A stretch of 64,000 nucleotides of DNA from Piromyces finnis finn (lineage: Eukaryota > Fungi > Neocallimastigomycota): contig MCFH01000053.1 of assembly GCA_002104945.1 (NCBI GenBank), positions 326,967 through 390,966 of the forward strand. The letters run 5' to 3'. The translations under genes and the position numbers were made by a program. Positions 33,670 to 64,000 of this stretch are shown one piece after another. The notes below the pieces were generated by a model. It was not told where the DNA came from. It did not search any database and worked only from the letters and a program-made list of their open reading frames with translations. How positions within the stretch are numbered: the first letter of the stretch is position 1; the number at the start of each line of letters is the position of its first letter.

Positions 33670-35812
33670 TTATTTGAACATACCTTCATACTCAGTAGTA
33701 TCTTTGACCTTTTCTGTTTTCTTTCTGTAAAATTGAATAACTGGAAGAGAAATAGAGGTGAACAACATATATATTGAAAGAAATACAAATAACATTTTTC
33801 CTCCTTTGGTAATTTCGAAAAAGGTTAAAATAAATCTATGACGCTTAGTATTATTTAATTCATTTTGTCCTCCTGTAGCGACAATTTGAAGAACAATATT
33901 AACAATGTTTGCAATAAAAATTAAAATGCAACTACTTAGCATTTCAAACTTTTATTTCAAATAAATAAAAATACATTAGTAAATTTTCTTTTTTTCATTA
34001 TTTTATTAAAAATTTTTATTTTATTTAAATTTCAATTTGATTACTATTTAATATACCTTAGCTCCATATTTATTTGCATCTTTTACGAATGAAAGTAATA
34101 TAGTCATAATTAAACTGAGGAAAGTGTATAAACCACCAAAAATTTGAACCATAATAAAGAGCTCTTTACCATTATTATTTTTTAATTCTATCATTGCATC
34201 TTTATATTCAAAAAACCTTTTAAAAATAATTTAAAAAAAAAAATAAAAGTTAAAAATTTTAATAATCTATTTTTTTTTATTAAAATTAAAAGTATTATTA
34301 TTATTACTATTATTACTATTTACCTGCATTTATCATAATATTGAGCGTGACGACTAACAGTAACAATAAATGAAATAACCTTTTAATTATTGAATTAAAA
34401 TATTTTCAATTAAATATATTTATTAATTTTTATTTCATATACTTTTATTAATTTAATAATTACAGTTGGAATAAAGAGAATAGCATAAATAACTCTGTTA
34501 GCTTTTTTTCTAATAGTAATTTCTTGTTTTTTTTCATCATGTGGAATTGTTACATCATGATAACTAACAACTATAAGTAATATTAAATTATAATATGAAA
34601 TATATTAGTTTTTTTTTAACAATCTATTGACAATTAATATTATAACATAAAAAAAAAAAAAAAAAAAAAAAAAAACATACGAAATGACTTTTTAAAGTAA
34701 TGTTGCAATACAAGACTAAGAGTTCTACAGAAAAATCTATTTTTTAATATTTATATTATATATTTTTAAATATATTGTTTATTATCCCAATAATTTTTTA
34801 ATAAGCAATCTTACATTAAATTAACAAGAACGTTCAAAACATTAGCATTATAAACAGATACTACAACATAAAAAAGATAAAAAATATTTTTTAACTAATT
34901 AATATGATAGTGTAAACAAAACGAGAATTATATATGGATTTAAAAGTACTTACATGGGCAAGAAACTTTCATAAATTGCGGTATCTATTAATAAGCAAAA
35001 AAAAAAAAAAAAAGGTAAATTATTATGAAAGTTAACTAATAATAATAATAATAATAATAATAATAATAATAATAATAATAATAATAATAATAATAATAAT
35101 AATAATAATAATAATAATAATAATAATAATAATAATAATAATAATAATAATAATAATAATAATAATAATAATAATAATAATAATAATAATAATAATAATA
35201 ATAATAATAATAATAATAATAATAATAATAATAATAATAAAAAAAAAAAAAAAAAAAAAAAAAAAGAAATACATACGAAACCAAAGAAAGCATTAAGGAA
35301 AGTTATAATACCACCGAAAAAAGATAAACCGAAACCTCTTTGAATGACAATACCAGATTCACGAATTTTATAATAACTAAAAAAAGAAAAAAAAAGTTTC
35401 ATTAATAATAAGCTATAATAATATATTCTTATATAAAAAAAAAAACATATTGGAATAATTTATACATTCTCTTATAGTTTAATTTGATTAAAAATTCTTA
35501 CAATATTAACGAAGCAATAAAGAATATATTATAAATGACAAAAATAGTAAAATAAATATATTTCTCAATTTTAAAATCATCCGAATTAAGAAAACCACTT
35601 TGTTTATATTTTTGGAATTCTTCATGAGGAACATGAGTAGTATTGAATAATGCTTTTTGCTAAATATAATTATTTAGAAAATATAAATTGAATAACATTA
35701 AAAGTATTATTCATATTTATATTATTTTAATTACTATTAGAAATAACTGCATATCTTTCCATATTAAAATATTAATTTACATTTTTATTTTAAATATTAC
35801 CTTTTCAATCAT
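33670..35812 (-). CDS. 7TM receptor, array copy 1: intact seven-TM region, RGS domain missing or decayed
   Basis: Ten exons checked in frame from MIEK (35801-35812) to ...SLPVIQFYRKKTEKVKDTTEYE. The frame then ends either unspliced (GMFK*) or, if spliced, at ALQ* near 33580. No ENVLFW motif occurs downstream before Scc2. Confidence 0.75.
35038..35238. repeat. (AAT)n microsatellite, about 67 units plus a poly-A tract, in an intron of copy 1
   Basis: Perfect AAT run. It accounts for the poly-L/I/Y ORFs in the ORF track. Confidence 0.95.
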
Positions 35813-37026
35813 TATGACAAAGTTAAATTATTTATCAATATTGGAAAAAAAAAAAAAAGCAAAAGTATAATGTAATTTTAAAAATTAAATTTGTTTATTG
35901 CTTTACTACTATTACTATTACTACTACTATTACTACTACTACTACTACTACTAATAATAATAATAATAATAATAATAATAATATGAATATGAATATGAAT
36001 AATATTATATAAATTAAATATATATATTTTATTTATTGAAGATATTAATATTAGAATTAATAAAAAAAAAAAAAAAAAAGAATTGTAAATGCGGTTTATT
36101 TGTTAGCACTTTTCAAAATAATACAAAAAAGCGACCTCTATTATTAAATATCACGTGAGCGTTTTTTAATTTCATAATAAATTCATTAAAATATTTTTCG
36201 TGTTACAACTATGAACATTGTATCACCTAAATTTTTAATAATAACAATAAAAAAAAGTAAATAAAATATATATAAATTTTAAAATTTCTTTTATAAAAAC
36301 GGAAAAAGTGTATCTTTAGGTAGATAATGTCTACCCAAACTTTTCTATAAGCTTTTAGGAATTTCATTTATATTTTTTATTTCTAATAAAACAAAACAAA
36401 AAAAATAACAGTAAAACTTTCAATAATCCAAATTATTATAAATGTTTTGTAAGTTCTTTTCAAAATTTAATTAAATATTTTATTATTTCCAAGTAATTAT
36501 ATTTTAATATCTTTTAATTATATTTATATATACATAGTTTTTTTTTTTTTTTTACTATTATTCTACAATCTAATATTAATAATATTAATAATATTATATA
36601 TTTATATATTTAATATTTATATATGATAATAATAGTTATATTATTTCTTTCTTTTAAAGAAAGTTGAATCTTTAATAAATATAATATTAAAAATAATTTC
36701 ATTTCTTATATTTTGAAATAATTTTTCTTTTTAATTGAATTGTTAACTTTAAATTGCTGTAAAATAAATAACATATTAATGTTATATAGAGTGATCAATT
36801 TTTTTTTATATATTTTATATTTATTTATTTATATATATATAAAAATGAAAAATTCTATAACTTAAATATTTATTTATTTAATGATTAAACTTCTTTTTTT
36901 TTTTTTTCCCTAATAATATAAAAAAAAAACTCTTATATTTAAAAAATAATATTATATAAATTAAAATATATTTATAATAATTGATAATAATATGAATGTA
37001 AGGAATAAAATATTTTATGTTGTTAT

Positions 37027-61064: not shown

Positions 61065-63126
61065 TTTTTATATAAGTACTTTATATTTCTACCAATATCT
61101 TTATTTCCTTAATGAAGAATTTTTAATTATCTTTTTTATGATTTAATTTTTTTTTTTTTTTTTTTTTTTTTATTTTATTTTATTTTATTTTTTAATAATA
61201 TATATTGTTATATACTTTTTATATTATTAATTGAATTATCATATTCAATAATTTTTATTGTGTTGGTATAGAGTAACTATTTATAAATTACTTTCTTTTA
61301 TTACTAAAGTTTTTTTTTTTTTTCTTTTTTTTCTTTTCTTCCTATTGATGAATTAAAATGCTCTTATTCTTTGAACTTGATATTCATAATTTTCACCAAT
61401 ATCTTTTTTTTCTTCTTTATTTCAAAACAATTTCTAAAAAATAAAAAAATTAAAAAAAGAAAATAATAATAATAATAATAATAATAATATAAAATTATTT
61501 TAATCAACTTTATTTTCTATTGGAACTAATATATAATATTCCAAATAAAATTTCAGAATTTAAACCTTATTAAATATTAAAGAATTAAACTTCATTAAAA
61601 AAAGAGATTACTTTAATTTATTCGATATTGTTTTAATACATTTTATACATTTAGTTTCTTAACAATTAGAACAATTCTTAATATATAGTACAATAGTAAT
61701 AATGTATATTATTTAATATATGATATTACCTATTCTAACAATATTTAAATTATTCTTTTTGTTATGATGAATATATAATAATATAAAAAAAAAATGATTT
61801 AATATTATTATTGGAACGTTAATCATATTTGTGGGCTCAACATTTCACCTATAATATTATTTTATTTTTATAAAAGAAAAAAAAATTGAAAAAGAAAATA
61901 AATATTATAATTATACTATTAAACCAATTTTATTTCAATTACTATTATAAAAATTTGAATATTTAATAATTGATATATAGAAAAAAAAAAATATATATAT
62001 ATAATGATTTAATCAAAAAATAATATTTTATTAATTTCTTATTATATATCACTAGAGTAATAAAGTATTCAAATCTAATAAAAAAAAAAAAAAGATATAT
62101 ATACATAATAGGTATAATTATTTAAATTTCATTGTTCTATTATTTAAAAAATGATAGAATTCTTGTGTGACATTTGTGTAATTATTTTTATTAATAATAT
62201 ATTAAAGTTTGGTATTTTAATTTGTTTTGAATCTGTTCTTTGAAATTTTATATTAAATAAAATTACAAGTATTTCTTATTTCATTCTATATTTATTAAAT
62301 AATCATTGGACAAATAATATTAAAAAAGAAACTTTTATTATTATTCTAATAATTAGAATTGGAATTAATTAGTATTATTTTAAATTGAAATTTTCTCACC
62401 AAAAAGGATTTTTTGATATTTTTCTTTATAATTTCAATTAAAGTTTGTAATTTAAAAAAATTAGTATTTGAAATGGCTTTTCCTTTTTTTTTTTTTATTT
62501 TCATTTTTGGGTAATATTTATAATTTTTTATTAAAATATTTTAAATTTATAATAAAATTTTAAAAATTATCTATAATTTTTTTTTTAAAAAATAAAGAAA
62601 AATCAAAAGGCTTATATAAATAAAAGTATAATATGTATATTATTATTTCTATGTTATTTTAATAATGGAATTTTTTTTTTTAAAATGAAAATATATATAT
62701 CATATAAATTAAATTTTCCATTTTTGGAATTTATTTTCAAAAAAAAAATTCCATTATTTAATAAGAGAAACAGTAATAAAGAATTAAAATAAACCATGCT
62801 TTTTGATTTTTGAATTTTTTTTATATTATGTTTTATTTATGTTTATAATTAATATTTTTTAAATAAACAATTAAATTATTATTATTATTTATAAAATTAT
62901 ATAATTTATATGTATCAAAAATTAACTGTTTATTGATAAACCATATTGATTAATTTATATACTATTTATTTAGTTATTTTATAAAAAAAATTTAATATAT
63001 ATATTAATAAATATATTAAATAAATAATATATAGTTTGATATTGATTAATTGAATGCGAATGAATTATTTCAAAAGGTGAAAAAAAATAAAATGTATTGA
63101 ATAAAATAAATAATATTCTAACATTA

Positions 63127-64000
63127 TTAAACAGAAAGATCGAAATGCCTTTTATTATTCTTTAATAATATTGGGAAGATAGATGTATACATCATTTCTA
63201 CTACTTCATTTTTAGCATTATCAAATATACCAACAGCTGGGTAAATGCTTATATCACATTGAATTTGTGATATTGTATTTCCTGATAGGTTTACAGCAGC
63301 CGGTCCATCATAATGAATAAATCTATTTTATTTTAATAAACATAAATTCATAAAATATAAATATTTAATAAACATATTTTTATAAATATAATTTTTATTT
63401 ATTGATCATTAAAACATACGTGTAGTAAAATGATGTAAAGTATGGCATGATTTCTTTTGGAATGGCCATATTTGGATCATATGAATAACTATCCATTGAC
63501 TGCGTTGGTTGGGTAGACATCATTTGTTGTTGGTAATATCCTTCAAAATCATATTGTGTAATGTATCTTTCATCATTCATTTCTTTTGCTTTTTCATATT
63601 CTATTTGATAACGATAAACCATTTTTTGTAAAAGTTGATAATTATCCCAAAACAAAACATTTTCTACTGAAAATTCCTTAATAGCAATGTCTCTTAATTC
63701 ATTGACTAATGCTGGAGTATTTAATACTTTATAGAAATATTGAATTGAACTCATTGGCTATTAAAATAAATAATTATAAATATTAATGAAATACTTTTAA
63801 TTAAACAAAATTTTATTTATTAATTTAAATATTTACTTCTTGGAAATATTTGTTCTTTTCGGTTTTTGCTTTATAATAGTGAATAAGTGGTAAAACAATT
63901 GATGCAAATAATATATAAATTGCAACAATAATATATAAAAATTTTCCACCATTTGTTATATCAAATAACTGTAAAAATATTTTAATTCTTCCTCCCTTTC
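63127..64000 (-). CDS. 7TM-RGS receptor, array copy 7 (3' part only; the gene continues past the window edge)
   Basis: TNGGKFLYIIV..ILPLIHYYK, LRDIAIKEFSVENVLFWDNY, AAVNLS, IFDNAKNEVVEMMYTSIFPILL. Stop at 63127. Confidence 0.85.

Follow-up and report, generated by a model that had tools for sequence, protein, structure and literature searches.

The window analysed here is the final 64 kb of contig C182 of the anaerobic gut fungus Piromyces finnis (assembly 56.5 Mb, 232 contigs). Its positions 33670-64000 carry seven minus-strand paralogues, copies A to G, whose complete members all encode a seven-transmembrane (7TM) protein that, except in copy A, ends in an RGS box (Table 1). On balance we favour the view that these genes form a conserved tandem array of receptor-GTPase-activating protein (GAP) genes of anaerobic gut fungi. 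Each complete gene encodes a short and usually glycosylatable extracellular N-terminus, a seven-helix bundle closest to G protein-coupled receptors (GPCRs) of class C (the glutamate, GABA-B and taste type) without the large ligand-binding ectodomain of that class, a disulfide pair linking the third transmembrane helix (TM3) to the second extracellular loop (ECL2), and a highly conserved cytoplasmic face together with an RGS box that is interrupted by an insert of ~50 residues. In the mechanism that we propose, the RGS box would speed GTP hydrolysis on at least one of the ~8 G-alpha subunits at the membrane, and the place and timing of this would be governed by the 7TM bundle, either through a small ligand held in the bundle or the short loops or through a partner receptor. 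Seven diverged paralogues, the RGS-less copy included, could give several differently tuned inputs.

An earlier note on this DNA had read seven same-strand paralogues in the region, and exon-peptide matches and spliced models bear this out. Four exon peptides from the window each gave six to seven minus-strand matches between 33.7 and 64 kb and none elsewhere in the window. In an all-against-all comparison of stop-to-stop segments, each copy consisted of the same ordered series of conserved pieces, with exon-to-exon E-values of 1e-11 to 1e-61, which excludes chance resemblance. Gene models were built with our own protein-guided spliced aligner, the tiny first exon being placed by eye, and the splice guides were cDNA-derived homologues from rumen metatranscriptomes (P0044-P0054) that are 42-65% identical to the complete copies and 81% identical to partial copy G (P0048 in this last case). 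Window proteins were searched exon by exon, and the joined spliced proteins were used for local alignment, hydropathy, trees and the ratio of nonsynonymous to synonymous substitution rates (dN/dS); an intronless paralogue (L001:1604-3259:+) and database proteins served as stand-ins in whole-protein searches and folding. None of the seven models contains an internal stop, and all introns are GT-AG (62/62) and 69-292 nt long. The single exon layout and strong divergence claimed by the earlier note are both evident: copies B-F have 12 exons in common, with exons 3, 4 and 6 measuring 100, 31 and 56 nt in every one of them, exon 5 measuring 46 nt in B, D, E and F and 43 nt in C, and exon 9 measuring 160 nt in B-E and 169 nt in F, and pairwise identity among the copies is 38-63%. 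Three deposited models provide an independent check, each crossing several predicted junctions at 99-100% identity: BCR36DRAFT_361182 is identical to residues 1-330 of copy A, BCR36DRAFT_460764 is 100% identical to residues 208-515 of copy B, and the partial model BCR36DRAFT_251506 is 100% identical to residues 14-347 of copy F. A transcript look-up by exact sequence for copy B gave no match; full-length cDNA-derived homologues of 509-526 amino acids (aa) are present in transcriptome assemblies. The 5' part of copy G lies beyond the end of the contig, which is also the end of the window. That complete copies end in an RGS domain holds for B-F, as for the partial copy G, and fails for copy A, which is complete and has none; a search for an RGS remnant downstream of copy A and in the gap between copies D and E found nothing. 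Several cDNA-derived homologues from other samples (P0097, P0109 and P0111, ~335-360 aa) also end after TM7, like copy A; they may genuinely lack the RGS box, or be transcripts in which the intron behind the TM7 exon has not been spliced out.

Table 1. Features of the 64-kb window, in window coordinates; the paralogues of the array are given first, followed by repeats and neighbouring genes. LTR, long terminal repeat; ORF, open reading frame.
Feature	Position	Strand	Description
Copy A	35812..33670	-	10 exons, 334 aa; complete 7TM-only gene, without RGS box
Copy B	39551..37027	-	12 exons, 515 aa; complete 7TM-RGS gene
Copy C	44368..41580	-	12 exons, 509 aa; complete 7TM-RGS gene
Copy D	48953..46186	-	12 exons, 514 aa; complete 7TM-RGS gene
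Copy E	56260..53368	-	12 exons, 512 aa; complete 7TM-RGS gene
Copy E, exon 11	53676..54007	-	RGS N-terminal half (KEFSVENVLFW), then ~50-aa family-specific insert
Copy E, exon 12	53368..53566	-	RGS C-terminal half, with conserved Asn in GPAVVNIT
Copy F	61064..58478	-	12 exons, 535 aa; complete 7TM-RGS gene
Copy G	63983..63127 (feature 63127..64000)	-	last 3 exons (TM7 and RGS)
(TAA)68 perfect microsatellite	35037-35240		inside intron 3 of copy A
(TTA)53 microsatellite	41832-41991		inside last intron of copy C
LTR element, 3.1 kb	49505-52636		occupies most of the D-E gap
CFAP61 N-domain exon	1457-1921	+	unrelated neighbour of the array
Sel1-repeat ORF, 1094 aa	8195-11479	-	unrelated neighbour of the array
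Calponin-homology exons	17.5-18.8 kb	-	unrelated neighbour of the array
Cohesin-type HEAT repeat exon	26.5-27.7 kb	-	unrelated neighbour of the array

Hydropathy analysis gave seven TM peaks in every complete copy, and AlphaFold models of the intronless paralogue and of P0052, an array-type cDNA homologue, each contain seven TM helices. The N-terminal glycosylation sequons named in the earlier note are all present (NTT in A and in B, NST in C, NST and NET in D, NFS in F), and the N-terminus of copy E has none, in keeping with the 'usually' of that note. Since these sequons precede TM1, basic residues follow TM1 (YKLRNSYIIRQR) and TM3, and the RGS box is C-terminal, we predict from the sequences that the N-terminus lies outside and the RGS box in the cytosol. 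Hydropathy, sequons and basic inner loops thus agree on seven helices and an outward N-terminus, and not on fewer helices or an inward N-terminus, which the earlier note had named as contrary findings. The Cys pair that it placed at the top of TM3 and in ECL2 is near-invariant, both residues reaching a conservation of 90% or more in alignments of 38 and 26 family members (C102/C204 in the numbering of the intronless paralogue, C97/C192 in that of P0052).

Selection on the array was judged from pairs of whole copies, and its individual regions were compared by identity, since dS values of ~1.0-1.7 make region-wise dN/dS unreliable. Every pair, including those with copy A, gave a dN/dS of 0.21-0.51 (0.33-0.51 for copy A against the others), and all copies therefore look selectively maintained. 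The regions most conserved among the copies are the N-terminal half of the RGS box (78%), the third intracellular loop (ICL3; 73%), TM7 (66%) and ICL1 (60%), and the least conserved are the N-terminus (35%), ICL2 (36%), ECL3 (36%), TM4 (37%) and ECL2 (37%). Such a pattern would be expected of a constant cytoplasmic coupling face and a variable outer one, but ICL2 is as variable as the outer segments. The variable extracellular loops of the earlier note accordingly stand in so far as the extracellular segments, at 35-47% identity, are among the least conserved parts; they do not demonstrate a loop-based ligand repertoire, given that ICL2 and TM4 vary equally and the outer loops are short (9-31 aa).

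The RGS half was recognised both in the window and in homologues, and the 7TM-RGS fusion proposed by the earlier note is confirmed by a check against Pfam RGS (PF00615, curated cut-off 23.9 bits). In a genome-wide search, the last exon of copy C (G000:C182:368579-368752) scored 29.5 bits, above the cut-off, and in the exon-wise search the last exons of four copies matched the C-terminal half of the domain with 16.1-22.8 bits (E 1.3e-4 to 0.015), the best of these being copy B (22.8 bits, E 1.3e-4). Copies B-G all terminate in the RGS box, whose two halves are separated by a family-specific insert of ~50 aa. In copy E, exon 11 aligns with the N-terminal half of RGS10 (2i59_A; E 1e-4), KEFSVENVLFW standing against KEFSEENVLFW, and exon 12 covers positions 56-106 of the 117 of Pfam RGS (16.1 bits) and aligns to residues 72-127 of RGS18, with PAVVNIT against PKEVNLD. 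The intronless paralogue scores 29.5 bits and its close homologues 29.0-39.1 bits, all above the cut-off, and 37/38 family members match Pfam RGS at E<=1. Sequence and profile matches in the PDB are RGS chains of the GAP-active R4, RZ and R12 types (RGS4, 8, 10, 17 and 18 among them). The modelled RGS folds superpose on RGS4 (1agr_H) with Z 14.9 and a root-mean-square deviation (rmsd) of 2.2 Å over 116/116 residues for the intronless paralogue, and with Z 13.8 and 1.8 Å over 114/116 residues for P0052. Conservation is at least 90% for the S-x-E-N motif (here S-V-E-N) and for the Asn of AVN(I/L), which align to the corresponding motifs of RGS8, RGS10 and RGS18; this Asn, aligned with EVN(I/L)D of RGS8 and RGS18, we take to be the equivalent of RGS4 Asn128. 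We believe that the RGS boxes are likely, but not assured, to be GAP-competent.

The 7TM bundle, to judge from the models and from a chain of distant sequence matches, is a far-diverged relative of the class C or 7tm_3 type. The N-terminus before TM1 comprises ~37-42 residues in which no Pfam domain was found, and it holds no Venus flytrap/ANF or SBP type II ectodomain. A Pfam scan of the TM exons taken singly gave noise only, a sequence search of the PDB with the full paralogue and a family profile search returned RGS chains and no GPCR, and Foldseek alone gave no match at E<=0.001. The class C signal was evident after structural re-alignment of the Foldseek list and in an unbiased structure search of 48,161 representative chains, which was independent of Foldseek. 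For the model of the intronless paralogue (predicted local distance difference test, pLDDT, 75.5) the top 50 of the re-aligned list were class C without exception, the best being mGlu4 (Z 19.7, rmsd 3.5 Å, 246 residues). In the unbiased search, ranks 1-19 were taken by class C receptors, among them mGlu, GPR158, TAS1R, GABA-B, GPR156, GPRC5D and CaSR, and by two designed GPCR-like folds (Z 16.7-18.9), class A beginning at Z 15.2. The model of P0052 (pLDDT 76.4) gave Z 16.4-18.3 for class C and at most 14.7 for class A, so that the best bundle matches to class C lie at Z 16.4-19.7 and rmsd 3.0-3.7 Å over ~240 residues. Further likenesses are the TM3-ECL2 Cys pair and weak Pfam 7tm_3 matches in some gut-fungal members and their relatives (at E<=1 in only 2/38 family members), and in profile-profile alignment with class C bundles (hhalign) TM1-TM3 stand in register, with the TM3 Cys on the invariant Cys of the P. 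finnis class C receptors. GPR156 and GPRC5D are also alike in having no large ectodomain, and GPR158 is alike in its link to an RGS protein, a link that in the gut-fungal family lies in cis. The family differs from class C GPCRs in that its 7tm_3 scores stay below the curated cut-off (PF00003, 33.5 bits), the profile-profile match is weak, and no Venus-flytrap or SBP ectodomain is present, and membership of 7tm_3 is for these reasons not claimed. A C-terminal RGS fusion is, moreover, not a feature of animal class C receptors.

The array belongs to a family of at least ten loci in the P. finnis genome. The TM6-7 exon matches nine places, namely the seven of the array and one each on contigs C193 and C168, where the dispersed genes are intact, and the first RGS exon matches 12 places, adding an intronless gene on contig C156 and weaker candidates on C150, C112 and C24. 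The C150 match (G000:C150:253012-253323, 43% identity) contains one in-frame TGA and may be a pseudogene or have an intron inside the match. The C156 gene, our intronless paralogue, is a single ORF of 552 aa (L001:1604-3262, equal to G000:C156:679603-681261) that is 100% identical to NCBI protein BCR36DRAFT_579791, whereas the array genes have 11 introns; it is the only member of its type that we found in P. finnis, and four genes of the C156 type share one contig in Piromyces sp. E2 (PIROE2DRAFT_4435, 4437, 4439 and 4440). Two queries used in word-based searches retrieved 58 and 87 proteins, of which every named one is from Neocallimastigomycota (Piromyces sp. E2, Neocallimastix lanati, N. 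californiae, N. sp. 'constans', Anaeromyces robustus and Orpinomyces) and the others are from metatranscriptomes.

A deep division into two clades separates the array type of the family from the C156 type in trees built with a quick IQ-TREE variant and supported by the Shimodaira-Hasegawa-like approximate likelihood ratio test (SH-aLRT) only. Within the array type, N. lanati P0072 and A. robustus P0075/P0081 form a group with copy B (SH-aLRT 99), A. robustus P0069 is the sister of copy D (98), A. robustus P0061 and Neocallimastix proteins cluster with copy F (83-88), and the dispersed C193 paralogue is the sister of copy E (98). On A. robustus MCFG01000007.1, six family genes lie on one strand at ~55-108 kb with two unrelated genes interspersed, and in the C-terminal tree genes 2-4 group with F, E and D and genes 1, 5 and 6 with the G, C, B group, genes 5-6 joining C/B (SH-aLRT 97) and the link of gene 1 to G being without resolution. 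N. lanati has at least six members on one 1.79-Mb contig, same-strand neighbours among them. Anaeromyces and Neocallimastix carry orthologues of B, D and F in same-strand clusters, and the array is therefore older than the divergence of these genera; it appears to be ancestral to P. finnis, Anaeromyces and Neocallimastix, with later lineage-specific duplication (A/B/C, and E to C193). The expansion claimed by the earlier note therefore stands as a matter of numbers, at least ten loci comparing with one to five class VI genes per species in the listed rows of a recent census (PMC12842992), but it was no recent local burst, which these orthologous clusters and the clade-by-clade colinearity of the A. 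robustus cluster rule out.

Beyond the gut fungi the family has distant relatives. A profile built from 7TM-only sequences (A4) gave 78 matches among 1.84 billion representative proteins. Those with a name are from gut fungi except for a distant tail: the chytrid Gaertneriomyces, Basidiobolus and the heterolobosean Pharyngomonas (E 6.7e-7 to 1.1e-4, all with a C-terminal RGS), the chytrid Phlyctochytrium (E 5.3e-4) and Dimargaris. Most of the full-length distant relatives also end in RGS, and several have a weak or threshold 7tm_3 match, as do Pharyngomonas (RGS 97 bits, 7tm_3 28.8 bits) and Dimargaris P0169 (7tm_3 exactly at the cut-off of 33.5 bits), so the RGS fusion itself, on sequence grounds, seems to be common to the remote relatives too. 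No Ascomycota or plant protein is among the named matches. Chytrid fungi are known to have 7TM-RGS proteins (de Mendoza et al. 2014, PMC3971589), and these chytrid and other early-diverging proteins are the nearest true relatives, albeit very distant, the gut-fungus branch forming its own two clades; that paper reports no arrays or expansion for them.

The kinship with GprK and AtRGS1 drawn by the earlier note thus holds for architecture and probably not for descent of the 7TM half, whose fold is most like that of class C. The class VI receptors GprK/GprR of Aspergillus and Metarhizium likewise have seven TM helices followed by a cytoplasmic RGS, and their expected role, that of a membrane negative regulator of G-alpha (PMC13308352), is alike. 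They differ in that no kinship of the 7TM half is detectable, as judged from profile matches and census hidden Markov models without a direct GprK comparison, and the gut-fungal genes stand apart by their copy number, their old tandem array and the ~50-aa RGS insert. Arabidopsis AtRGS1 shares the arrangement of a 7TM bundle and a C-terminal RGS box and differs in that no plant protein appears among the named profile matches, again without a direct AtRGS1 comparison. AtRGS1 is usually described as single-copy. It serves as the model of a receptor whose control is exerted on GTP hydrolysis and not on exchange (PMC3718340, PMC12017998).

The family appears to have been missed by published counts of fungal receptors. 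An early inventory lists 34 GPCRs for P. finnis, 32 of them class C and all of these with large ectodomains, and leaves RGS unmentioned (Seppälä et al. 2016, PMC5168858). The recent census, in which 28,294 GPCRs of 1357 fungi were classified (Liu, Salamov, Grigoriev 2025, PMC12842992), gives P. finnis 30 GPCRs, with 26 in class 16 (7tm_3) and none in class 6 (GprK-like RGS), the latter also being zero for Piromyces sp. E2, A. robustus, N. lanati and N. californiae; its pipeline needed full-length similarity to known queries and 6-7 predicted helices. We attribute the absence from these inventories to a 7TM half that is not recognisably GprK-like and to public models that are truncated or split, which also hides the fusion from surveys of domain architecture. 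The deposited models of copies B and F are truncated (BCR36DRAFT_460764 and BCR36DRAFT_251506), and those of A. robustus (ORX83505/ORX83504) and N. californiae (ORY22609/ORY22608) split the 7TM and RGS halves; in UniProt, some 7TM halves carry the label 'GPCR family 1 profile' and the other halves 'RGS domain-containing'. A limited check of the open-access literature found no paper describing the gut-fungal array family.

Several observations weigh against a receptor-GAP array. The extracellular parts are short and offer no evident ligand site. Both folds were computed on homologues 31-65% identical to the window's spliced proteins and not on these proteins themselves. The gut-fungus family stays below the 7tm_3 cut-off throughout, with 23.7 bits as the best score (P0058) and three members with sub-threshold matches, and the hhalign comparison with eight class C bundles of P. 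finnis gave a weak match (E 0.015, probability 3%), so that the class C link is drawn through the fold and a transitive chain of sequence matches. In Aspergillus oryzae, the RGS domain of class VI receptors rescues the phenotype by itself (reviewed in PMC13308352), and a 7TM-RGS protein therefore need not be a ligand sensor. In addition, two contact residues of RGS4 in helices 7-8, Asp163 and Arg167, have Ser and Ile as their counterparts in our alignments, which makes the strength of any GAP activity uncertain.

Class C receptors work as dimers, and GPR158 recruits RGS7. The array proteins might accordingly be co-receptor subunits that pair with large-ectodomain class C receptors or with each other, copy A included, and bring the GAP to the complex. 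Such a role would suit the class C-like bundle, with GPR158, GPR156 and GABA-B among its top matches, the maintenance of the RGS-less copy A under purifying selection, and the ~79 places in the P. finnis genome that match 7tm_3 together with 26-32 annotated class C receptors with sugar-binding ectodomains (PMC5168858; PMC12842992), but the window itself contains no class C receptor gene, and we regard this explanation as unlikely though worth keeping in view. More specific, and in our judgement quite doubtful, is a two-part class C code in which the array RGS proteins would heterodimerise with sugar-ectodomain receptors or RGS-less partners and the ligand of the partner would switch the membrane GAP; if true, this would be a receptor system signalling mainly through control of G-alpha deactivation, and it could underlie zoospore chemotaxis to plant material. 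The proteins could also be ordinary activating GPCRs, exchange factors for G-alpha whose own RGS box sharpens and shortens their signal by kinetic scaffolding. A strong GPCR fold, conservation of ICL1, ICL3 and TM7, which is where GPCRs contact G proteins, and several G-alpha genes in the genome (~8 loci) speak for this, yet the consensus lines show altered class C signatures, with Arg in place of the conserved TM3 Lys and the TM7 PKxY not kept, and known 7TM-RGS proteins are mainly described as negative regulators (PMC3971589; PMC13308352); activation is thus, to our mind, an improbable main function.

Two explanations remain. A scaffold role of the RGS box without catalysis, such as it has in GRKs and sorting nexins, with a function in trafficking or anchoring, would agree with SNX13 RGS scoring like RGS4 in the fold searches (Z 15.1 and 13.2), with the lack of conservation at the Asp163 and Arg167 equivalents and with an insert that splits the box. 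We nevertheless hold it to be very unlikely, as the family hardly varies in its S-x-E-N motif and active-site Asn and the sequence matches are to GAP-active types. Decaying duplicates or an over-interpreted gene prediction might be suspected from the missing RGS of copy A, the incomplete copy G and the fragmentary public models, but we give this next to no credence: all models are open with canonical splice sites, dN/dS is low at a dS of ~1 or more, orthologues are kept in other genera alongside full-length cDNA-derived homologues, and copy G is cut by the contig end and not by mutation. We therefore retain the array of membrane receptor-GAPs as our preferred explanation. Zoospore chemotaxis, as a biological role, would be compatible with it and with its rivals.

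7TM-RGS proteins are the textbook exception to the rule that receptors activate G proteins, and to our knowledge very few have been studied, namely AtRGS1 and a handful of GprK genes of Aspergillus and Metarhizium. Anaerobic gut fungi keep a whole family of them, and in P. finnis seven of its loci stand in an array that is older than the genera, with a receptor half that appears to be class C-like rather than GprK-like. New here is this combination of a class C-like 7TM bundle with an insert-bearing RGS box, in a family that gut fungi have expanded and keep in arrays and that published inventories lack. The published GPCR annotations of gut fungi can be corrected with these models, and the genes are concrete candidates for the sensors behind zoospore chemotaxis and substrate sensing in biotechnologically interesting organisms. 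They also offer a natural series of diverged receptor-GAPs, together with an RGS-less member, in which to study how a 7TM bundle controls an attached RGS domain.

G+C is ~18% across the whole window, the neighbours of the array in positions 1-33000 are genes unrelated to the 7TM-RGS family, and Rfam gave no family at threshold anywhere within the window. Many of the 7tm_3 matches elsewhere in the genome lie in tight same-contig clusters (for example C135:485-515 kb, C160:556-568 kb, C175:341-353 kb, C90:738-754 kb and C101:693-711 kb), so tandem arrays of class C-type receptors are common in P. finnis. The LTR element in the D-E gap has terminal direct repeats of 217 nt that are 100% identical and no ORF longer than 60 aa, for which reasons we regard it as young and non-autonomous, and more than 25 further copies at 94-99% identity occur in the genome. 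Finally, the (TAA)68 and (TTA)53 microsatellites inside introns of copies A and C give rise, in the mechanical ORF list, to spurious ORFs of poly-Leu/Ile/Tyr and poly-Asn.

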